A stretch of 63,575 nucleotides of DNA, counting the filler, from Reticulomyxa filosa (Eukaryota > Protista > Foraminifera), in assembly GCA_000512085.1 (NCBI GenBank). It is 17 parts of 17 records of this genome, joined end to end, with 100 filler letters (N's around TTAATTAATTAA, not from the genome) between each part and the next. Parts side by side here need not be neighbours in the genome. Positions count along the whole stretch, not along the records: positions 11,802 to 23,650 come from ASPP01013936.1; 16 more parts are not named here. One strand, given 5' to 3'. Positions 34-23,650 of this stretch are shown one piece after another. A program made the translations under genes and the position numbers. How positions within the stretch are numbered: the first letter of the stretch is position 1; each line of letters opens with the position of its first letter. The notes beneath the pieces were generated by a model. The model saw nothing but the letters and a program-made list of their open reading frames with translations, was not told where the DNA came from and searched no databases.

Positions 34-77
34 TTTAGATTTGTTTGTTTGTTTGTTAAAAAAAAAAAAAAACTCAA

Positions 78-761
78 CTGTACAAATAATAGCATACGCT
101 TGCAAAATACTTAACATATGCGCGTACTCTTTCTTCAAATTATTATGAAAGTCTTTTTGGCGAACGGGCAAATTATAAAACAATCGCGAGACTGTCACCG
201 TTGTACCCGTCTCACAAGCTATTGGCATACTATTCACTAACTCACCGTTCATATCGTAATTCAACTTACATCCAAGCTATTTTGTTTTATTATTTATATT
301 CATTTGTTTATTTGTTCATTTATTTTATACGATACCTCGTCGGATGCTGTCTTCGTAATCACTGCCAACTGACTCATTGCACACAACGAACTCAAGGCTT
401 CTCCACGGAATCCAAACGAATACAAATTTGACAAATCCTGAAACTTTGTCAACTTGCTTGTTGTATGCTTTTTTGCCAATAATTTATGGTCTTCTTTACT
501 CACTCCGCTGCCATTGTCACATACACTTATGCTATCCTTTCCAAACTCTTGCAACTTAATTTCAATGCTTGTGGCGCTACATTTTTTTTTTTATTTTATT
601 GTTGCTGCTGTTGCTGTTCCTGAACACAAACAGTCTCCACACAAATATTACCCTGCATCTAAGCTGTTTTCAACTAATTCTTTCACTGCTGTGGCTAAAT
701 CTGTCACAACCTGACTACTGCAAATTCGATGCACAGAATGCTCGGATAAATTTTTTATCAT
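78..761 (-). CDS. PMS2: MutL-family mismatch repair ATPase, PMS2/Pms1 type, N-terminal part (exons ~761-652, 576-336, 276-78; continues off the window)
   Basis: Spliced translation [37 protein letters not shown]|ATSIEIKL...DNGSGV...TSKL...[13 protein letters not shown]...|...[24 protein letters not shown] motifs and the MutL GFRGEAL signature are present; ICSxQVV is PMS2-like; the GT-AG introns keep frame. Confidence 0.9.
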
Positions 762-1646
762 ATCACACCCAAACGCATTTGAATTTTTTTAGCAAAAACA
801 ACACGTTGCTAGTTGTTAAGTAAAAAAAAAAAAAGTAAGGTTTGAATCTTAATATTAACAATTGTCGCCTTTTTAAAACAGCTTTGTTTCGTTTTTTACT
901 TTGTATTTATCCAGATGATGGGAACATAACGAAAGTATCAAGTGTAATGCAAAAAAAAATTTATCTGATCATACTGTTGACTCGTAAGAACAATTGAAAG
1001 GCAAACGACAAAGGGAAAAGAAAAAAAAAGTTATATTATTCCGTCGAACGTTTCGACTACCCAACTGGAGAAACTGTAGACGTTCAAAGCAAGGTCAAAC
1101 ATTATTTTCTGATGTTGCGACTTAAAACATCAATTTTTTGAGGAAAGTCAAAACCTTACTGTCAACAATTGATTTACGTGCATATTCAAATTCATTATCT
1201 TAAGTTGTAATGTTTAAACCTCCAAAATTTCATTTTAAACTGAACATACCTACCCCTTTCGACAACAGTACACTTGTCACTTTTTAATGGTTGTGCTTCG
1301 CAATGTTTCGAATTTCTTAAATGAAATGATAGAATTTCTTAGAAAAAACGATGAGCTTGGTTGAAATAAAAAAAAACAGATATAACTCAACAGAACAGGT
1401 AACTGAAGTTTCGGAGTACGTAAAAAGTGTTGTAACTTGTTCATATTCGAAAAATTGAAGAAGTTTCGGATAGTCAAAATTGAACAAATTGCGATATTTT
1501 AAGGAAAAAATGAGAAGAAAAAAAAAAGGATGAAATAATTGAATAGAAAAACAAGAATGAGAGGAGTGAAGGGGAGCGAATAATAATAATAACAGTAGCA
1601 ATATACTAGTAACAGAAAATAGTACTATGTAAAAAAGCAGTCCAAA

Positions 1647-2239
1647 TTAAAAGAAGCCTTGAGCCTTGACTCTCCGAATATCAACAGTGACTTGGCCCAT
1701 GAGATCCAGGAAGCCATTATAGTACTTTCGGAGGGTTCCCAAGGCCATGAACAGCCAAAAGACGCTGAGTCCAAAGACGAGATAGGCAGCAGCAGTGCCA
1801 ATGTAGAGAAAAGGTTGTGGTGGTTCGATTCCCCATTTCGCATGATAAATGTACCCCGAGCACACGGAGATGAGACCAGCAGCTCCATACATGAAGCACT
1901 CGACACGATCTTTCTGGCACCTTTGCATTCCCAAATGCAGTTGTTGATAGATTTGGTCGAGCAGTTTCAAAGCATCACGTTGTTGTGTGGAAGAGGAGTC
2001 AAGAGCGTTTGTAAGGCCCTTATTGTCACCATCATCATTATTATCATTATTATCATTATTATCATTATGATCATTATCATCATTCTTCTTCTTTTCCTTT
2101 TCATTGCTATGATCAGTGGACTGTCCACCAGATCGAAAGCTCAATTCAAAAGTGGCAGCAATTCCGTCGTGATCCGACAAGCTGCAAAGGCCTTTTCGAA
2201 GCAATGTAGTTTGTTTTAAAGTGGCATTATTATTATTAT

Positions 2240-2321
<82 letters not shown>

Positions 2322-3246
2322 CTATTATCATTATCATTATTATTATTATCATAGCCATTGACGACATGCGTGTGCGCATACTCTTTGAGAACTTTGGCAC
2401 GGACATCGACATTAGCAATGGCGCGTGCATTGTAATCGAACAGTACATAATCCAAGCGCAAAGGCTGAAGTTTCGCATTGTCGGCATTTGTGGTGAACGT
2501 GTTGGTGTGATTCCAATACGTAGTGTCCTCGTCGTGCAGCACGTCTCGCAAGCGACACAGCGTCTTGGGGATTTGGGCGACCAGGTCTGTCACTGGCGCG
2601 TTCAAGTCCGCGCACAGCACGCACAGCTCGCTCTTTCGTGTCAACTGGATGAACGAAGCCAAGTCGTACGCCTGCGCGACGCGGTGGCTATAGTACATGT
2701 CCACGCTCGGGTCAAACGCGTCCTCGTGGTAGCACGCGTGCAAGTGCGTGTTATATATATCCGCGCGAAATCGCTTGTTTATTTCGATTCGAATCAAGCC
2801 CACGCCTTTGTATGCGTGGTAGTCACCGTGATGGAAATAATGATAAACCCTTTTTTTTTAAAAAAAAAAAAAAAATCACCCCCTTTTTTTTTTTTCCTCC
2901 CCTTTTTTTTTTTTTAAATTTGTTTTGCACAATTAACCGTTAACAAAAAAGGTATGATACGACACTTCAATAATTGGGTACTTTGAAAAAACTACAATCC
3001 CGGTGGATTGAGCGGCGATGCTATTGCCATGAGGAAATTGATGAAAGTAGTAGTCGGTTGCACACTGCTTGATATCGTTCATGTAGTACTTCACAAAGGC
3101 CTCCTGGAAACATATGATATCGTACTCGCCGCTTTCTATTATCTCCTTAATCTTCTTGTAACGCACGCGCTGCGGAGATGTCAACAGTGGTGCTATCAAA
3201 TACAAATTTTGATTCCATATCTTCAGTCTTATCGTCGTTCTCGTTG
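1647..3246 (-). CDS. Neutral sphingomyelinase / ISC1-like EEP phosphohydrolase with C-terminal TM segments (5' end probably cut by the contig edge)
   Basis: Motifs across ORFs 2933-3205, 2318-2803 and 1647-2249: YDIICFQEAF, HHGDYHAYKGVG, YNTHLHA, ADLN, RLDYVLF, LSDHDG, then two hydrophobic helices. The frame changes inside the (AAT)n tract. Confidence 0.85.
2227..2351. repeat. (ATT/AAT)n microsatellite encoding poly-Asn inside the sphingomyelinase gene
   Basis: Long ATT repeat with occasional ATC interruptions. Confidence 0.9.
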
Positions 3247-3346
3247 NNNNNNNNNNNNNNNNNNNNNNNNNNNNNNNNNNNNNNNNNNNNTTAATTAATT
3301 AANNNNNNNNNNNNNNNNNNNNNNNNNNNNNNNNNNNNNNNNNNNN
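3247..3346. other. Artificial contig linker N44-TTAATTAATTAA-N44 (first of 16)
   Basis: The same 100-bp linker starts at 3247, 5243, 7901, 10602, 11702, 23651, 25876, 31667, 40728, 49439, 54264, 55451, 56561, 58227, 59580 and 62472. Confidence 0.99.
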
Positions 3347-3365
3347 TTTCATTGATAAACACAAT

Positions 3366-3420
3366 CATCTATATAAGGTGGCATTTTAGGTGTCAACTTT
3401 CTTTTTTATCTTAATGTATA
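3366..3420 (+). repeat. Dispersed ~50-bp repeat, copy 1
   Basis: CATCTATATAAGGTGGCATTTTAGGTGTCAACTTTC... is closely similar to 26049-26101 and 53456-53506. Confidence 0.75.
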
Positions 3421-4092
3421 TTGTATATTCGGCAAAACATGTCGATGTCATGTATGTGTATATTGTGTAAATGAATGTACTTAGTTTGAGTTAGAATAGA
3501 AAATCGCAAGAATTGTTAACAAGTAACTCAGATTCGAATTGAGCGCAAATCGAACATGTGGTAAATAGCGCCACATACAAATATGAATAAAAATAATAAT
3601 TATATCAGTATAGTAATGGCAACATCCAAAGCGATATCCACTACAAATGCAGATGCAAATGCAAATATTGCTGCTGACAGTAGCAATAGTCATGATAGAA
3701 CCACTTGTGGAATAAACAACACAAATTTATCACAGTCTCTCGGATATGGACGGAGTCGAGGAACAGTGCAGACGTTGGCCGACACTAGATTTGATCCATT
3801 GAAGGCATATGTCTCAGTTAGCACAAAACAGAAACGCAAATAAAAAAAAGAAAGGGTAAATGAAAATGCGTATTTAACTTTGTTTGCATTGTGGATTGCT
3901 TTGGAATTAGTAAAGTCGAGCATAATAGCTACTGCGGCAACTAAACAAGCTTGCAAATGCCATTCTAAAAATCCATCTTGCAACTGTCAGTGGTCATGAT
4001 CATAATAATAAATAAGATGAATTTAAGAAAAACAACAATAAAAATAAACAAGTTCAGACCAGTGATGCTGGTAAAGAAATACGCTTAAATTA

Positions 4093-4309
4093 GTCTGTGA
4101 TTGTTGATGATATCATTTATCAATTACAATGTGGCGATTCTCCGGACGTGTTGGATAATTTGGCGGAAATTGTGATTTAATATGGATATGTCATCCTGTT
4201 TGCAGCTGTGTTTCCACTTATGCATTTGTTCAGTTTGATCAACAACTTTATCAAATTTGCCGTCGATTTCCATTATACACATGTTCAACGCCATGTGGCA
4301 ATAAAATAA
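4093..4309 (+). pseudogene. Anoctamin/TMEM16 fragment with an in-frame stop
   Basis: Not in the ORF track. Reads DVLDNLAEIVI*YGYVILFAAVFPLMHLFSLINNFIKFAVD...QR, matching the anoctamin ExxIQxGxVxLFxxxFPLxxLFxLxNNxxE...D motif, with TAA (4178-4180) at the Gln position. Confidence 0.7.
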
Positions 4310-4829
4310 GAAGAAAAAGCTGACATTGACAATGAAGAAAGAGATTAAAGAAATTTGTAATAATTTTTCTATTTCTGATTAGCTTGGTGTGGTATGAAGT
4401 GATTTGTTTTAGTATCTGAAACTTTGACAGCACTTTTCATTACTCATCAAACATTTTTTGTTAATATTAACAAAGTAAAGCCAAGTCAAATTGCCTTTTC
4501 TAGATTTTGTTTGAGATCTGTTAATTGTACTAGCTGTTTTAATTACATCCTGACAATAGCATTCTTATTATGAGTTATTCGCTTGGATAAAAAATCAACA
4601 AAAATTGCAAAAATTTTCGTAGTTGTTTTTTTGAAATGACTATTTTAAGTATAATAGCAATACGGGATTGCTCTGACCAACTTAATTAAAAACACATCTT
4701 TATATTTACAATAACACATCCAATTAAAAATCAAACAAAACAAAAATCAAAAGATACCACATTCACTGTATATTTTTTTACAAAATACTTTTTTTTGTTT
4801 TGTCTGTCTCCTTTCTTCCTTCTTTAGAA

Positions 4830-5113
4830 TCACAGGCCTTTATTGTAAAAAAATTGCATTTCCTTGATGACACTTTCATCAAGTTGTGTCATTTCTCTAA
4901 CTTTGGCAACCAGATGTTTTTCCACACGATGTCCTGGAAGACTGTCTTTTTGAGGGAACAAGGCCATAGAAGGAGGAATAAAAGTCATCACCGTCAAGCC
5001 AATCAAAGCAGCTTCGACCGACAACCTGCCCCAAAATCCCATTCTCGCAAACAATCGCGTTTCATCACATATTTCATCATAACTGGCGGGAAGAACATTG
5101 GAGGCACTGACTT
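4830..5113 (-). CDS. Sideroflexin (mitochondrial carrier, SFXN/Fsf1), final exon
   Basis: Contains IPPSMALFPQ and ends FFYNKGL*, the sideroflexin C-terminal signature. An upstream VPPMFFPPVMM in a shifted frame suggests a homopolymer error near 5062. Confidence 0.85.
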
Positions 5114-5201
5114 GATTCAAACATATTAAATATAATATTAATATCATATTTTGAAAGTCGTTGTTATGTACGTTTCCGTAAACAAAAGAAGCAAAAAAGT
5201 A

Positions 5202-5240
<39 letters not shown>

Positions 5241-5342
5241 CCNNNNNNNNNNNNNNNNNNNNNNNNNNNNNNNNNNNNNNNNNNNNTTAATTAATTAANN
5301 NNNNNNNNNNNNNNNNNNNNNNNNNNNNNNNNNNNNNNNNNN

Positions 5343-12649: not shown

Positions 12650-13618
12650 TCAGTTACTATCTCCCTCCTCGTTGTTGTTGTGTAAGAAATTCCATTGATT
12701 TTCTGTTTGTTCATGTTCATCATTATTTTCGTTATTGTCGTCATGCATTTCATTAGCCTCGAGATGATCATCACCCTCTCTTCCAATTTCTGATTGATTT
12801 TGAGTGAAAGGTTTTTGAAATTTCTTTTCTTGTGAGTGTATTTCTTGAAGTAACAACGACATCCTGGCAAATAATTTTGGCTGTCCATTTTTTGTTTTCA
12901 TTTGGAATACTTTGTTGCGTTTATTGCGTTGTTGAATCTTCTGTTGTAGTTGCTTTTCGCGCTTTTGTTTTGCAAGGATTCGCTGCTCTATTTCCTTTCT
13001 TTTCATTTCTCGGATCGCTTTTCCTTGCAATTGTGCATTGACAACGGATCTCTTATTGGCTGTGAAATTGCTTGAGCTTGTTTCACTCTCTGCCATTTGA
13101 TTTTTAGTTGGTGGCCACTTTTTTGATTGGGTGCCCGGTCGTTGTTGATTGACTGCACTTCCGTATTCTCGTTGAGATGTGCGCGACGATGGTGTTGTTG
13201 TCTCTGGTAAAGCTTCTTGGCTATCTTCGTTTTGAATGCCCGATTTAAATTGATCCAGAGTTTTGTCCATCCAAGACCAATCCGATTTTTTCTCGTCATA
13301 TGGTTGCTTTTTTACACGTTGTTCCATGTTCTTGGGATGCCACACGTTTTTATGCTTTGTGGATGAATTTCCAAAATAGTACTTTTGCTCTCGATGCAAA
13401 TCTTTCATTGCTCGATAATATCCACGCATTACTCGTCGCTCGACTCGCTTTTTTGCTAGCTTTTCTTCGCTGTATTGCTTCACCCATTCTTTTCGCTTGT
13501 GTAATTGGCGCTGAAATACTGAGACACCTCGCCTCTGACGTTTTTCAGGGGCTTTGGTTTCCTCTTTTGATTTATCTCTTTTTCGCTGTGGTTTGAGTTT
13601 TTGTTCATTATCGCTCAT
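12650..13618 (-). CDS. Fyv7/TAP26 (CCDC59)-like nucleolar rRNA-processing protein
   Basis: Intact 322-aa Lys/Arg-rich ORF with KTKNGQPKLFARMSLLLQEI, resembling the Fyv7/TAP26 TKKGQP...M..LL..I motif. Confidence 0.7.
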   Translation of the reverse strand: MSDNEQKLKPQRKRDKSKEETKAPEKRQRRGVSVFQRQLHKRKEWVKQYSEEKLAKKRVERRVMRGYYRAMKDLHREQKYYFGNSSTKHKNVWHPKNMEQRVKKQPYDEKKSDWSWMDKTLDQFKSGIQNEDSQEALPETTTPSSRTSQREYGSAVNQQRPGTQSKKWPPTKNQMAESETSSSNFTANKRSVVNAQLQGKAIREMKRKEIEQRILAKQKREKQLQQKIQQRNKRNKVFQMKTKNGQPKLFARMSLLLQEIHSQEKKFQKPFTQNQSEIGREGDDHLEANEMHDDNNENNDEHEQTENQWNFLHNNNEEGDSN

Positions 13619-14513: not shown

Positions 14514-16243
14514 TTAATCGGCACATACTTTTAGAAAACGATGTTGCAACAGTTCATCCATAGTTATTCTTTTGTTCGCAGGTGTAAAGATTTTCTCCAT
14601 TACATCTATCATAAAACAAGCGATCCCCTTTTTTTTTTTTTCTCTCCTCCTCTTTTTTCTTCTGACATATTTTTTTTTTATTATCCCAAAAGACAAATAA
14701 CAAACGACAAACCAACAACATCAGCAGGCAGACAGTTGAGCCAATCCACATGTTTCGGCAACGTTCTGAAGTGCCCATTGATAATACTTTTGAAAGTGCG
14801 ATCCGTGTCGCTGGGCAGTTCATACAGCTTTTTGCGTGCCAATATCATATAAAGCATCACCCCTAAGCTCCAGACATCGGCCAGCCGTGCATCGTACTTT
14901 GACTTTGCATATACCTGATGCAATATTACATTACACCATTAGTGTGTGTATGTGTGACAAAGGGGAGAGAGATAGAGAGAGAAAAAGAGGAACATGAAAA
15001 AAAAAAAAAAAAAAAGGGGGAGGATTACATTCAAAAACGAAAAGACCAAACTTCAGGCGCCATGTAAATGACCTTTCCCACTTGCTTGTCAAAAGTGAAA
15101 TCGACGGTATTGGTGGACAGTGCTTTTAAGTCGTTGGCCACATCGACCACCGAGGAGGACAAAGAAGAAGTAACATTACCAGTAGTAATGGCAGTATCAA
15201 AGCGTTTGGCCATTCCAAAGTCGATGAGTTTGACCAAGACCGGGAAATCGGGATCCAAAACAACCCTTTTGGAAACCACGGCCTCGACATTGAGTTGTTC
15301 ACTGGTCTGTCGCGACAACGACAGTGAGCTCTGTTGGGACAGTAGACTACTGCTCCTTCGCATTTCTTGAAACGTTTCTCCAATGCTCAAATTGCTTGGC
15401 TGTGGCGTTACCACCTCAGCAGGCGTCGTGGTGGCGGTAGCGACGTCCAAGCTATAACTTCGTGGCATCTTGCTGCTGCTGTCCAAGGTGAAATTCTTTG
15501 TATCTAATGGCATCGTTGTCACCACGTTCTCCAAACAAATGTGCAAATGACATACGTTGCCACAGCTGTGCATCCAGTGCACACATTCCACCAATTGCTT
15601 GAAGATGTACTTCACGTGCTGTGTGTAGACTTCATAAATGTCTTTCACCAGTAATTGACGACTGCTACGATTGTCTATTGGAATCTTACTGTGGTCTTTC
15701 TTGCGATATTCTTCATTCACGCGAGCGATGCTGTGCTTGTATAACGTCTCTGTAAATGTGTACAGCTCACCTCCGTTGCAGTATTCCATCACTATGTAAT
15801 CAAACTTCTCGTCACTCCAGCTCTCAAATGCTTGTGCAAAACCTTTTGTTTTGTGTTCAACCAATAACCTAACAAAAAAAAAAAAATCCAAAAAATGAGA
15901 ACCCCAAAAAAAAAAAAAAAAAGGATGAGTGCTTTTACGCAAACCCGAACTTTTTTTTTTGTTAACATGGATGAGGGGTTTTTATGCTCGATAAACCCAA
16001 GTGTATCTCTTTCTGCTCTCCCAATTTTACTACCGAATTCAAACCGTCGATTGTCTTCCCCGATTTCACATATTGCTTCACTGCAACGTATTCATTGGTT
16101 ATCGTGTCTTTATATAGCCAAAGGCGTCCTGTTCTCGTGTCTGCCAATGCCCGCTTTGGTATGTATCTTGAGGCTGGAGTAACATCTGGCTTGATACTAT
16201 GGGACAGTTCCAACCCTTCTTTTTCTTCGCTCGCCGTGCTCAT
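14514..16243 (-). CDS. Multi-exon Ser/Thr protein-kinase-fold protein (CAMK-like), probable pseudokinase
   Basis: YVAVKQY, YIVMEYCNGGELY, VKLIDFGMA, GKVIYMAPE|V, ADVWSLGVMLY and KRITMDELLQHRFL are present. The catalytic loop reads CHLHICLEN, with no Asp. Confidence 0.85.
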
Positions 16244-16701: not shown

Positions 16702-18849
16702 TTATGATTTGTCGTCAATATCGAGGGATGCATTTTTAGTCAGTTGCAAAGGAAGATTAGAAGTGATCGACTTGCACATGTCCAACACATGTTCTTTTTT
16801 CTTAAAATAATAAGATGCCTCCAAGTAGGGATTTTCATCGATCCAATGAACGACCATGCGCAGAAAGTATTCTATTTGTGCAAAATGTTGTTGGTTTTTG
16901 TCTTTGTCAGCAGAGCGACGCAATTCCAATAGCACTTGATAAATATAGCGTTCCAAGTTATTTTTGGCAGCAAAATTCTCTGCGACGTTGGAATCGTAGT
17001 TGTTTTGAACGCAAGTATTTTCCGTGATCTGGACTATTTCTTTTGCTTCGAGTTGATATTTGGAAGAGGTGACATGCAGCATTTTATTATCGCGTTTTTC
17101 TTTGGCGGAAACAGACAAAATGCAATTGTTATCCAAATCAAATTTAATTTCAATTTGAGGAACACCTCTTGGAGCTGGAGGTATACCTTTCAATTCAAAC
17201 TTCCCTATGCAAGTGTTGTCCTTTGTCAACATTCGTTCCCCTTCAAATACCTGAACTACAACCCCGGCGTTGGAGTCTGAATACGTAGTGAATACTTCGG
17301 TCGTTCGACAAGGTAAACATCTATGTTTAGGAAATAATTTTACCATCTCTCCTCCTCGAACTTCGATGCCTATGGACCGCGGTGTTATGTCGAGACAAAT
17401 TATATCTTGTATGGGGTCCATTTTTTCGCCGCTACGTATAGCTGCAATGACCGCAGCCCCGTACGCCGCTGTCTCATCGTGTCCATGAGTGCACATCTTG
17501 GAAATGTGTTTCCCCTCAAAAAAGTCTGTCATTAACTCTTGTAGCTTTGGAATATGTGTGGACCCCCCTACCAACACCACGTCATCGATGTTTGCTTTTG
17601 TCTTCTTACTGTCTTTCAGCACTTGTTCGACATAATCCAAACACGTGTAAAAGTATTGCACGCACAATTCTTCAAATCTTTTTTTTTTTTTTTGACAATG
17701 GTATAACACAATAAAACAATCTTTTTTTTAAAAAAAAATTAACTTTGTTCTGGTAATTGATAATTCAAAATCACGTCCTTTAAATAATGAGCCAATTCGA
17801 ATGATGGTTTGTGTTGCTGAGCTTAGTGTACGTTTTGCACGCTCACAATAGACAAACAGTCTTGTCATGGCGTTTTTATCTGAGGTCAGATCTAGCTTGT
17901 GCTTTCGTTTAAACTCTCCAACACAATAATCCACCAGCGCATTGGTGAAGTCTTGTCCACCGAAATGGGTGTTCCCTGCTGTGGCGATTACCTCAACAAT
18001 CATCTCCTCTATAACTATCAGTGAGACATCAAGAGTTCCGCCACCCAAATGCAACACCAACACAAGTTTTTCTTTCGATAAGTCGAGTACTTTTTGGCTT
18101 ATCATTAATTGATCACTGCTGCGGTCGGTGCGTTTATTAGTTGCAACACTGTCAATCCTGCTATGGTTGCTGCATCTTTTGTTGCCTATTATAAAGCGAT
18201 TTTTAAAAAGACACTTTTTTTTTTCTCTTTAACCTCAGCGTAGATTGATGTCCATTCAAAAAAAAAAATTACGTATACATGTGCAAATTAAAAAAAAACA
18301 ACTTGTCTTTGTGAATCAGTAAAATGTGCAGGGACCGTAATCACAGCGTTGGTAACAGGACACTTGAGAAATGCTTCTGCCAATTCTTTCAAATGACGTA
18401 ATATCATTGCTGATATTTCTTCTGCGAAGAAATACTTGGTTTCATTTTTATACATTATTTCAACTGCAAGTCGGTAGTCTGGCTTTTGGATCACTTTAAA
18501 TGGCCATCGCTTTATGTCGTTTTGCAACACCACATCAGAAAACCTTTGCGATGTGTGTGTGTGTATTGCACTGCTTTGCCTTGTTCCATGCTTGCATTAC
18601 AAAGATCTACCTTTTTCCAATTAGTCTCTTTGCGTCGTATATAGTATTCCTTGCGTTGCTTGTGGCCTGACTCTTTGCTGATGCTCCAACTGATTTTCCC
18701 AAATCGGTGAACGACACGTATGAGGGTGTTGCTCTTTCTCCTAATTCATTAGATATTATTTCAACTGCCTTTTTCGTCCAAGTCGCTACGCACGAGTAAG
18801 TTGTGCCTAAATCGATGCCTATGGGAGGTTGTTTAGCACTAGTACTCAT
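16702..18849 (-). CDS. Divergent cytosolic-type Hsp70 (multi-exon, one frameshift near 18106; possibly a pseudogene)
   Basis: [48 protein letters not shown] and [13 protein letters not shown] are present. No C-terminal EEVD. Confidence 0.9.
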
Positions 18850-19190
18850 CGATTTTTTTTTTTGCAAACCGAACAGGACAAATTTTTTGGTAAGCAAACC
18901 TTTTCCTCCTTAGCAATTAAATTTAGTTTTGTGAATTTGAAAAATTCAGTTTATCGTTGTAATTTAGTAGTGATCCTTATTTTAAGTATTCGTTGAATTC
19001 AAAAGAAATGATCGTGAAGAAACAATAAGTTGTAGATGTTTATAGAATATTTGAAATACAGTTTGTTAGCTTTCGACTAGTGCAATCTTAAACAAATTCA
19101 ATAAACAAAAGAAAACAACTTGCATGCATATTGCAAATAGTATATTGACAAGTTGAATATTCGAACAGCACGCAAGAAATGTGGCATGTA

Positions 19191-21796
19191 TCAAATGGGT
19201 ACGGAATTAGGAAGAAAGACCTTAAGAAAAGTGATAATAATGGACACCAAAGCGCTTAAAATGGCACTTAACAGCACGCCACTCAAAGAGACCCCAAAGA
19301 GCTTTGGAAGAAGACTTTTGCGTTTGACAGTTTTCAGCATTGAATCAACAAAATTTAAGTCATAGATATTATGACGAGGAATGTGAGAATCAGAAGGAAG
19401 GAGTAGTTTGATGGCCTCCTTGTCATTGAGTTGTTTGCTTTCCTCGCTCTGCGGAGGAGCAAGTACTTGAGTTTTCCTGGAGTTTTGACTAGGAGGTATC
19501 TGTCGAATGGAGTCGCAATGTAAATAAAAGTGTTGATCGGCGATGAGTTGTTCCTGACTATCTTGGATGTTTTCAAAGGCCTTGCCAGCAATGGCAATGC
19601 GAATCAAGCAAGTAACAGAGACGAGAAAGAACCAAGAGATGCCGTCAAAAAGGATGGACCGAATGACCTGACGTTGATGATTGGGAACAAAGAAGGCATC
19701 GTAGAAGATGAATATGCCTTGTGCCAGTGTTAACAGTACTAAGAATGATGTGGATATTTCCTGTTCGCCAAACAACACCACGCCTTCCACACCCAAAAAG
19801 GACCGCAGTTCCAGCCACCCAAGCACATTGCTTTTTAGTTTCAAACTCAAAAAAAGCTTCGACAATTCCTCGCGACTCGAGGTTTCCGCGCGAGATAAAA
19901 GCATCGTTATGGTTTCCATCCACTTTTGATAATTACCTATTCATAGATGGAAAATATATATATACTACATATACATATACATATAATATATATATGTATA
20001 TAATCTGTAAAGAGAAAAACCTAAGTTTTTGGAATACTGCCATTCAACTCCCATCAATAAAATAGCCATTAGCAAAAAATTAGCGACAACGGCTCCCGCG
20101 GTGAGCGTAAAGTCAGTGTAAAAAAAGGACGTGTTTAGGATGGACACGCGAACGAGTCCGGGGATGAGTCCGTAGACAAGAGACATGGAGAAAATATACA
20201 CGAGAGCGAACCAAGAGAAATGTCGGTTTCGTTTGGATTGACGGGAGAACGCATACGATCGCAGGAACGTATACACGTCGCATTGGTAGTCAAACTTCTC
20301 CCCGAAATACAAGCGCAAGCCTCGTAAACGAGTTAAGCTCGGTAACATCGGTTTGATAGTAAACTCGTGGCCTTCCCACACCGAAAATACCAGCCATAGC
20401 AATGCGTACAAAAACAACGGTCCAAACGTCTCCATCCATGACAACTTCTCTCCACCCCCATTCCCAGTCCCGCGGTTCCGAAATTGCGATATCGGATTGC
20501 GGATTATTATTACATACAACAGCGTGCTTATCAATATCAACAGCACGCGTAGTGCTAACTGACGCAACGACTGGATTAAAAACCAGTCCACATGCTTCAA
20601 GCTCTCCGGGTCGTATTTCGAACTCCTTCCGACTAGTGCACCCAACAAGTCCAGTGTTAATGCATCTTGTTTCTTGTCGTAATCGAATCCAGATGGATAC
20701 CATTTCGACACTCTTTTTTTTTATCATTTAAATTACCCCTTTTTTTTTTTTTTTTTTGCTTATTAAGCTTTTTTTTTTTTTTAAAAAAAAAACATGCTTG
20801 TGTTTCCAACGCCAAGCTAGCAAAAGCGGTACGTTCTGAACGATCAACACCAGTGGCAATGTGATCCCATAGCACAGCATGATAGCAAACCGCTTGTAAT
20901 GAAATGTCCTCTCCGCCACGAAATTTTTCAGTGACAAAATCGGGTAGGGAATGGTCTCGTCATTGAACTGCAAACTGTTTTTCACTGGAAATAGTCTTAC
21001 TGGTGTGTTCGTTAACACATCTACTCCTTCTATTCCATTTCAATTTCAAAACATATTCCAAAAAAAAAGGGGTCGTTTGACAAAAAAAAAAAAAAAAAAA
21101 GGTAACCAGCATATTATTAAATACATATACGTGTATGTAAGCATGTGCAATAGGACGTAGACCATTTGCTGTGGTTGCGTCACCCTGCAATTCGATAATT
21201 TTCTCTTCTGTGGCGTCTTCTTCTTTGCATATGCCAACACAAAACGTATACCAATCGGATGTGGCCTTTTCGTCTGCAATTTGATTTCGATTTTGCATGA
21301 TCTGATTTGCCAGGTCATGAAAACATTTGTCGACGTTTTCTCGTGTGTACGCAGACGCTTCGATATAATCCACGCCCCATTTGTCCGTCAGATCCTTTAC
21401 CTCCTTTGTGCTAAATTGTCTTTCATTTTCCAAGTCTTTCTTTGTCCCGACCACAACCATTGGGAAGCTCGTCTTGTCTTTCGAGCGCAGAATTTTTTCA
21501 CGGAATGCAGAAATCGAATCCAGTGTCGATCGGTCACATAAGCTAAACACTAAAATAAATCCGTTGCCATCTCTTATCCATGCATCGTGGAAAGACGAAA
21601 ACTCTTCTTGTCCTGCGGTGTCCAATACTTCCAGCACCAACCCTTCTTCGTTTATTGAAATTTGTTTCCTGTAACTGTCTTCTATGGTCGGGTCGTACGT
21701 GTCGTGAAAATGATCGGTGATAAATCGTACCACTAACGCCGATTTACCTGCCCCTCCAGCACCCACTACTACTACTTTAGCTTCTGAAGACGACAT
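19191..21796 (-). CDS. Ras-family GTPase fused to a multipass membrane domain with PHTF/7TMIC-like motifs (predicted exons 21796-21163, 21029-20798, 20712-20021, 19936-19191; 767 aa)
   Basis: G-boxes GAGGAGKS, YDPTIEDSY, DTAGQEEF, TKKD and EASA; no CAAX or stop right after the G domain. A phase-1 GT-AG intron at 21162-21030 joins in frame to the TM exons, and the exons sum to 2304 nt. The Ras domain is high confidence; the fusion is inferred from splicing. Confidence 0.75.
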
Positions 21797-22052: not shown

Positions 22053-23650
22053 TTGGACATTGACATGGCAGACGTGCAGCCAGATACTGGAGCGAATGAG
22101 AACGAAGATGGTGAAAATGAAAATGGGAACGGTAATGGCAACGACACGGTGGACGACAACAGCGGAGATGGAGGTGATGACGAGAATGAGAATGTAAATG
22201 AGAATGAAGAAGAGAACGAAAATGAAAATGTAAATGAAGATGGGGATGGGGAAGAACAAGAAGAGCAAGAAGAGCAAGAAGAACAGGAACCAAATGAAGA
22301 AGGAATGGAGATGAAAGAAGAGGATTTAGACGCGAACGATAGAAAAATAGTCCAACTGTACGAAATCGTAAGTGAGTTAATCGAAGAGCAAAAAGCAAGG
22401 ACACAGGATTTGTATTTGCTAGTAAGTAAGCGTGACATCGAGCAGTTAATGAAGGCTATTGAAGAACGAAACGACTCATTGTTCCGATCGCTGCAAGGTG
22501 AATTTGACCTGAAAAGTGCGGAGAATGACGAAAATTTGGAAGATGGTAAGTCCTTCATGAATGTTATCGGCAATGCGCGATATCTATATGTGCATATATG
22601 TATACATACATATATGCATATGCATATACATGTGTATGTATTATGTACATATATTAAACTTTTACAAACAAACAGACGAAATCGACGCAAAGTTTGAGCT
22701 GTACAACGATATTGTGAAAGCTTTCAATCAGTATTTAGAAGCAGTAGGAAGTGTGGCATTGCTATTGCAAGAACAAAAACTGAGTCAAGTGTTTTGCGAA
22801 GGAGAAAAATTGAATAATTATTAATAAAAAACTTTGTGACTGTTATTTTAGTAATGTTCCAAATTCCACTTTTGCATCTTTTTTTTTTTTTATAAAAAAA
22901 AAAAAAAAAAGACGGAGGAGGAGACAAGAATACGTCGAAAACAAGAAACGAGGAAATCGAAGCGGAAATAGTGGAATTGCAACAGTTGTTAGGCGAGCAG
23001 ACGATACTGTTGAAAGAGCAAATGAAAAAGAACGAAGACTTGCAAAACGTGTTGCAATCAGTGTTAGCGGAATACAGTAACAAGATCAACGTGAGCAACA
23101 AACAAATCAAAGAGTCGAACGAGCAGCTGTCCGAGCAAAACAAGACGCATGTAAAGCAGTTGAACGACTTGAAGGTGGCATACGAGAATGAGTTGATGCA
23201 TTTGAAGCAACACAAGGATCAAATGTACGAAAAGGAGATCAACGAACTGATTCACACGCTGTCGGAAGTTCGCAACCAATTCCATGTGCAAGTCCAGGAG
23301 CTGACGAAGCAGATCGAGGGCAATCAAAAGAAGTACGACATTGAAGTATTGCAGCTCTCCGGAACTATTCAAATGCTGACTCATGACTTGGAAGACGCCA
23401 AAACATCAGTCACGCGCTTGGTCCGTGTCAATTCCAATTTGCAACAGCGCTGTCAAACCCTTCAATTAAACAGCGAAAGCCAACTCCAACTGCAAAAAGC
23501 ACGCGAATTCCAGCTCTTGTGCGAGTCTTTGGTTTCCAGTAGAACCACCGTGGATGTGGATTTGGACGCAGATAGTGACGTCGATGCACGGTCGATGCGT
23601 TCTTTCAATCCACGTTATCATCAATCAAAAAAGACTCGTCGTAATAATAA
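22053..23650 (+). CDS. Coiled-coil protein with an acidic N-terminal region (multi-exon, 3' truncated)
   Basis: ORFs 22053-22697 and 22971-contig end are E/Q/K/L-rich with heptad character and are separated by intron-like TA/poly-A tracts. Confidence 0.6.

Follow-up and report, generated by a model that had tools for sequence, protein, structure and literature searches.

Gene structure and single-chain relatives

We analysed a gene on the minus strand of a 63,575-nucleotide stretch of DNA (the window) from Reticulomyxa filosa, a member of the Foraminifera, which are shelled or naked amoebae of marine or freshwater habitats. Four exons between positions 19191 and 21796 join into an open frame of 2304 nucleotides encoding 767 amino acids with zero internal stops. 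They very likely form one gene encoding one chain, in which a Ras G domain is followed by a linker with a cysteine cluster and by a membrane domain that resembles PHTF proteins and is predicted to adopt the seven-transmembrane ion channel (7TMIC) fold; this chain very probably belongs to a multi-paralogue family spread across Foraminifera.

Exon 1 (21163–21796) carries the start codon, the G domain (residues 5–170, delimited with Pfam and a KRas alignment) and the initial stretch of the linker. Intron 1 (21030–21162; 133 nucleotides, GT-AG, phase 1), which an earlier note on this DNA had proposed as joining the Ras exon in frame to the rest, was recovered exactly on re-derivation. Exon 2 (20798–21029) begins the membrane domain with a conserved strand block and a proline-kinked hydrophobic helix (H1, 20886–20830), while exon 3 (20021–20712) encodes a short TM0-like helix, the transmembrane (TM) helices TM1 (20558–20502) and TM2 (20435–20379), a short first intracellular loop (IL1), TM3 (20207–20151) and TM4 (20111–20055). 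After intron 3 (19937–20020; 84 nucleotides, GT-AG, phase 1), exon 4 (19191–19936) contributes the anchor-domain helices with TM5 (19742–19686) and TM6 (19643–19587), a variable loop, TM7a and TM7b (19280–19224), and the stop codon. GC content is 43–46% in the exons versus 15–29% in the introns. Intron 2 (20713–20797; 85 nucleotides) has GC-AG boundaries, and an alternative GT-AG intron (20810–20711; 100 nucleotides) leaves the frame unchanged; the two differ by five codons, giving 767 and 762 residues, respectively, and the frame is lost if the nearest plain GT donor (20793) is used. The open four-exon frame claimed previously therefore stands, its length of 767 residues requiring the GC-AG form of intron 2.

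A protein search found exon 4 identical over all 247 residues to the R. filosa protein ETO19181.1 (RFI_18052). This NCBI model keeps intron 1 unspliced, lacks the greater part of exon 2 and partly translates intron 2, resulting in poly-F and poly-K stretches. Retention of intron 1 as annotated was rejected; the annotated product is missing the exon-2 block conserved in the family, and the splice model of the earlier note is superior to the public annotation. Judged against its relatives, ETO19181.1 is mis-spliced in a way that hides part of the membrane domain, and the exon structure given here corrects it.

Homology searches were run with single exons or database proteins as queries, the joined model being translated for frame and hydropathy alone. 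All four window exons match the same single proteins in collinear order, in agreement with the proposal that the Ras and membrane exons are one gene, and family proteins aligned back to the window DNA, with no gene model used, keep this order across three frames. Ras and membrane domains occur on one chain in 18 other proteins: Nonionella stella (n = 2), Bolivina argentea (n = 4), Ammonia (n = 2) and Elphidium margaritaceum (n = 1), with the remainder from EukProt, MMETSP, JGI and ENA records, marine metagenomes included. The MMETSP records are transcriptomes whose contigs are directly translatable, and an AT-rich contig (L001) bears an intron-free genomic fusion gene of 874 uninterrupted codons within a paralogue cluster, with genes at 1–753 (−) and 931–3555 (+) arranged head to head and a third Ras start at 3891–4016 (+). 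The fusion is also present, broken by short gaps, on a Tara contig. Because these 18 single-chain proteins include transcript-derived sequences and an intron-free genomic copy, we judge the fusion to be real, old and expanded into paralogues.

The possibility that two neighbouring genes, or an artefact of the splice model, have been mistaken for one fusion draws on the irregularity of intron 2, which is either non-canonical or ends on the second of two AGs, and on the several in-frame donors and acceptors of intron 1. Against this, exon 1 runs without a stop up to intron 1, family homology starts at codon 10 of exon 2, upstream of any ATG, and the other Ras–membrane chains are partly transcriptomic and in one case uninterrupted in DNA; we consider such a misreading highly improbable, and the two-gene model was rejected on the collinear single-chain relatives.

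Mean identity between family members is ~39–40% in the Ras and membrane domains alike. Pairwise distances of the two domains correlate (Mantel rho 0.59, p 0.0014). The two domain trees, mostly unresolved and lacking a free-Ras outgroup, share one group of four members. The co-variation fits long joint inheritance of the two domains and would be compatible with one or several origins. A fragment from the radiolarian Astrolonche contains the membrane domain, with no Ras part seen on it, and the membrane domain may thus range across Retaria. Low-sensitivity pattern scans found no relatives among viral, prokaryotic or JGI metagenome contigs; two database proteins, P0040 (a plant NLR) and P0043, were discarded as matches by chance.

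The G domain, its linker and the membrane domain

Exon 1 matches Ras in Pfam (PF00071, E 7e-50) and KRas itself (E 2e-49), and it contains the effector loop YDPTIEDSY, as had been read from the DNA. Like KRas and R-Ras of the Ras subfamily, the window copy has motifs G1–G3 and the effector loop, with G12, G13, T35 and Q61 intact; unlike them, it has T for N116 and Y for K147 (TKxD and SAY in G4 and G5, instead of NKxD and SAK), an attached polytopic domain and, as previously claimed, no CAAX box at its end, the chain terminating in a membrane helix. In the family as a whole, the lysine and serine/threonine of the P-loop, along with T35, D57 and G60, are invariant and the effector loop is conserved at 0.8–1.0, and for this reason nucleotide and magnesium binding and a partner for switch I look selected. 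D119 is kept in 18 of 19 members. Other positions drift among paralogues: 5 of 15 differ at G12, 10 of 15 at G13 and 5 of 18 at Q61, and T stands in place of N116 in 10 of 19. Changes of this type at G12, G13, Q61 or N116 of human Ras impair hydrolysis driven by GTPase-activating proteins or speed up exchange, and paralogues without G12, G13 or Q61 would hydrolyse GTP slowly and stay mostly on.

Downstream of the G domain, all 15 members measured have a cluster of two to four cysteines spanning no more than eight residues, located 40–72 residues past G5. In the window copy, the cluster comprises C186 and C190 (21227–21241, minus strand), C186 being aligned with the region of KRas4B that holds the CAAX cysteine; a CAAX-like tetrapeptide lies internally at residues 186–189 and nowhere terminally. 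An internal CAAX cannot be prenylated, and palmitoylation of the linker cysteines is plausible. This arrangement suggests that the fusion arose through loss of a Ras stop codon. The earlier proposal that the GTPase is anchored by fusion instead of by prenylation is right about the absent terminal CAAX but oversimplifies the anchoring, as the cluster kept by every member is possibly palmitoylated.

Hydropathy analysis of the membrane domain identifies nine hydrophobic segments conserved in the family, eight of them strong and one short. An excess of lysine and arginine ahead of H1, TM1, TM3 and TM7b and behind TM6 indicates indirectly, by the positive-inside rule, that the N-terminus is inside and the C-terminus outside. 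Since basic residues precede both H1 and TM1, both helices are predicted to begin in the cytosol, so that H1 would either be re-entrant at its invariant proline or return via the short TM0-like helix, and the Ras domain would be cytosolic, on the same side as the anchor domain.

Sequence searches of the membrane domain in Pfam and PDB matched nothing, and a single-sequence fold of exon 4 reached a predicted local distance difference test (pLDDT) score of only 48 and was not used. We therefore relied on an AlphaFold model of the membrane part of a relative, P0059 (residues 452–1026, monomer, 77-row alignment; pLDDT 87.1, predicted template modelling score 0.84), whose fold should apply to the window protein because the family profile recognises window exons 2 and 3 with probabilities of 97% and 100%, respectively. 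Comparison of such a model with insect Orco and gustatory receptor (GR) structures had been recommended earlier, and in Foldseek the first eight rows were all odorant receptors (ORs), Orco or GRs, yet with E above 0.001. In a wide structural search of 48,161 chains, the top eight were again all OR, Orco or GR (Z 9.9–14.8 over ~300–340 residues), the next match having Z 7.7, and a second structural comparison placed 19 such rows before any other fold, with Z 12.0 to Orco (6C70), the matches of both searches lying in model residues 87–575; the published Z for human PHTF1 against Orco is 12.9 (7TMIC literature). A GPCR-type or ABC fold was rejected. Additionally, a non-exhaustive ESM Atlas search returned a PHTF as the top match (TM-score 0.61, 404 residues aligned, root-mean-square deviation (rmsd) 4.1, residues 1–575), with the next at ≤0.27.

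The model contains the long TM4–TM6 anchor-domain helices (266–307, 360–408 and 417–464), a TM7 split into helices 506–539 and 551–574 by a break at the near-invariant P544, and short, possibly TM0-like helices (80–93) that align to the OR N-terminus, with an additional helix (34–60) ahead. Language-model features place P0059 residues 452–1026 near DUF3537, 7tm_7 and DUF267, all of them 7TMIC families, and near TMEM39B, which scores 0.94 amid these families and may itself be a further cryptic 7TMIC. Taken with the structural rankings, the model supports the assignment made in the earlier note, a 7TMIC fold with PHTF as the nearest family; the domain is, on this modelling, PHTF-like but not a PHTF orthologue.

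The best structural match across the whole domain is to PHTF1, PHTF2 and Phtf, Class-B eukaryotic 7TMICs (PMC9998090, bioRxiv 2023.08.30.555482). IL1 bears strands preceding TM3 in both, and a comparison of the PHTF set with the family consensus, made by eye and unscored, finds the same motif order from TM0 to TM7b, with similar motifs at TM0, the start of TM2, the pre-TM3 strands, TM3, TM4, the pre-TM5 loop, the end of TM6 and TM7a. The three C-terminal motifs that the earlier note paired with PHTF motifs all lie in exon 4, and those PHTF motifs do occur in the published PHTF sequences, apart from small differences in letters. In contrast to PHTF, the fusion family has an N-terminal Ras domain, many paralogues per species, the extra kinked helix H1, a long variable loop between TM6 and TM7a, and an IL1 of ~50 residues (model 174–223) versus more than 300 (PMC9998090). 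The PHTF family PF12129 was matched neither in full-length members nor among the 25 Pfam families listed for the 77 alignment rows, and with the short IL1 this led us to reject a canonical PHTF orthologue. The insect OR, Orco and GR channels share the fold from the probable TM0 to the split TM7; identity to them is 7–12% with an rmsd of 5–6 Å, and they carry no fused enzyme.

Possible roles of the tethered G domain

The reading we favour, to which we assign roughly an even chance, is that the G domain acts in cis as a regulatory switch on its own channel-like membrane domain. By analogy with ORs and GRs, the membrane domain would assemble as a tetramer around a central pore that TM7b lines, each tetramer carrying four tethered G domains next to the cytosolic anchor domain. 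S-palmitoylation of the linker, whose cysteine cluster is a likely relic of an ancestral CAAX tail, would probably keep the G domains on the membrane, and switch I in its GTP-bound state would bind the membrane domain of the same chain from the cytosolic side or recruit a fixed partner, thereby setting how the channel-like protein opens, assembles or is trafficked. Channel activity and the direction in which control runs are both inferences.

Several points weigh against this picture. The model comes from a relative with ~35% identity, and Z scores of 10–15 fall where the structural tool itself urges caution, values under 13 being potentially common among helical bundles; the case for the fold is built on the clean OR/GR ranking, on coverage of the full domain and on the Atlas result as an independent line. 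TM7b is poorly conserved in sequence and lacks the TY..QF signature of GRs. The window copy, with G12, G13 and Q61, resembles an ordinary cycling Ras, and conservation of switch I is equally compatible with ordinary effector binding. Also, ion conduction has been demonstrated for no PHTF (PMC9998090).

Two other readings use the same parts differently. In one, control runs from the membrane domain to Ras: a stimulus from outside or from the lumen would be detected by the membrane domain, prompting nucleotide exchange on the attached Ras and so output to ordinary Ras effectors, for example in reticulopodial motility; the canonical, conserved effector loop, the small ligands bound by the OR/GR fold, the intact G12, G13 and Q61 of the window copy and the many paralogues per species, suggesting diverse inputs, all speak for it. 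However, the chain has no domain resembling a guanine nucleotide exchange factor, the loss of hydrolysis residues in several paralogues would blunt on/off signalling, and a tethered Ras forgoes amplification by diffusion, so that we regard this arrangement as rather unlikely. More doubtful still is a non-conducting scaffold, in which the PHTF-like domain replaces prenylation as an anchor in an internal membrane such as the endoplasmic reticulum (ER) and confines a Ras-like switch to one organelle, comparable to the tail anchor of Miro. The weak conservation of the pore helix and the absent terminal CAAX are in line with it, as is rat PHTF1, an E3-ligase-binding protein located mainly in the ER (PMC9998090); yet a whole 7TM fold with near-invariant anchor-helix residues is more than anchoring requires, and the linker cysteines alone could achieve it. 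The cis-acting switch is preferred over both because the residues for hydrolysis vary among paralogues and switch I stays conserved, and because no exchange-factor domain is present, a preference that is weakly constrained.

Both parts of the protein are of already known kinds, and it is their pairing that appears new. A literature search for a Ras fusion to a 7TMIC fold, with most subscription papers beyond its reach, found no description, in keeping with the earlier note. Trypanosome GRL1 is the sole fusion of a cytoplasmic domain to a 7TMIC that the 2023 papers report, and they report none to a GTPase (PMC9998090, bioRxiv 2023.08.30.555482); Reticulomyxa and its accessions were not found in the accessible parts of their text and supplements. 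The domain added to GRL1 is a repeat scaffold, whereas that of the foraminiferan fusion is a GTPase switch. Precedents for components of the design include FeoB (a G domain on a transporter), Miro (a helix-anchored small GTPase), RGK proteins (Ras-like control of channels in trans) and 7TM-RGS proteins (a receptor fused to a G-protein regulator); we know of none among these with a Ras-subfamily domain on a 7TMIC fold.

PHTF function in any organism and the channel status of non-animal 7TMICs are open questions (PMC9998090). An old, repeatedly duplicated Ras fusion is a Rosetta-stone clue, predicting that PHTF-like proteins act with small GTPases; the family thereby offers a lead on the role of the unstudied human PHTF proteins, and its fused G domain a built-in switch for probing them. 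It also adds a signalling design, a polytopic channel fold bearing Ras, in organisms about whose sensing and control of reticulopodia little is known. We tentatively extend this to a one-chain, GTP-switched channel or receptor of the OR superfamily, with paralogues tuned by changes at G12, G13 and Q61, and to a general partnership of PHTF-like proteins with small GTPases that includes animal PHTFs.

Neighbouring genes and divergent relatives

On the same contig piece as the fusion gene, an Hsp70 gene (16702–18897), a protein kinase gene (14514–16243) and a gene for an rRNA-processing protein (12650–13618) lie on the minus strand, and a divergently transcribed acidic coiled-coil gene (22053–23650, plus strand) begins 257 bases upstream of the fusion gene; the window gives no sign of a functional link to these four flanking genes.

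A second R. filosa paralogue, RFI_25074, is annotated as two pieces (contig L005, 437–2790) and is nearest to Ammonia P0033; its contig apparently begins within the linker, and a Ras domain was not seen on it. P0033 (L006, 140–3661) has 310 additional residues before Ras, which include an EF-hand-like stretch by eye and where Pfam is blank. In a divergent subgroup (P0049, on L003 at 57–3107, and L011 at 720–5298), N-terminal membrane helices precede the same 7TM domain, with a degenerate Rab/Roc-like GTPase remnant ahead of it (Pfam Roc E 1.5e-4 and 0.03), possibly representing a second GTPase fusion. Among relatives without Ras, P0050 (L004, 1907–5443) shows a weak SAM domain before the membrane domain and P0031 a clear C-terminal one. 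Finally, H1 (20886–20830) and the TM0-like segment (about 20650–20570) both carry an F-P ... Q-T pattern in several relatives, hinting at a local duplication of TM0.
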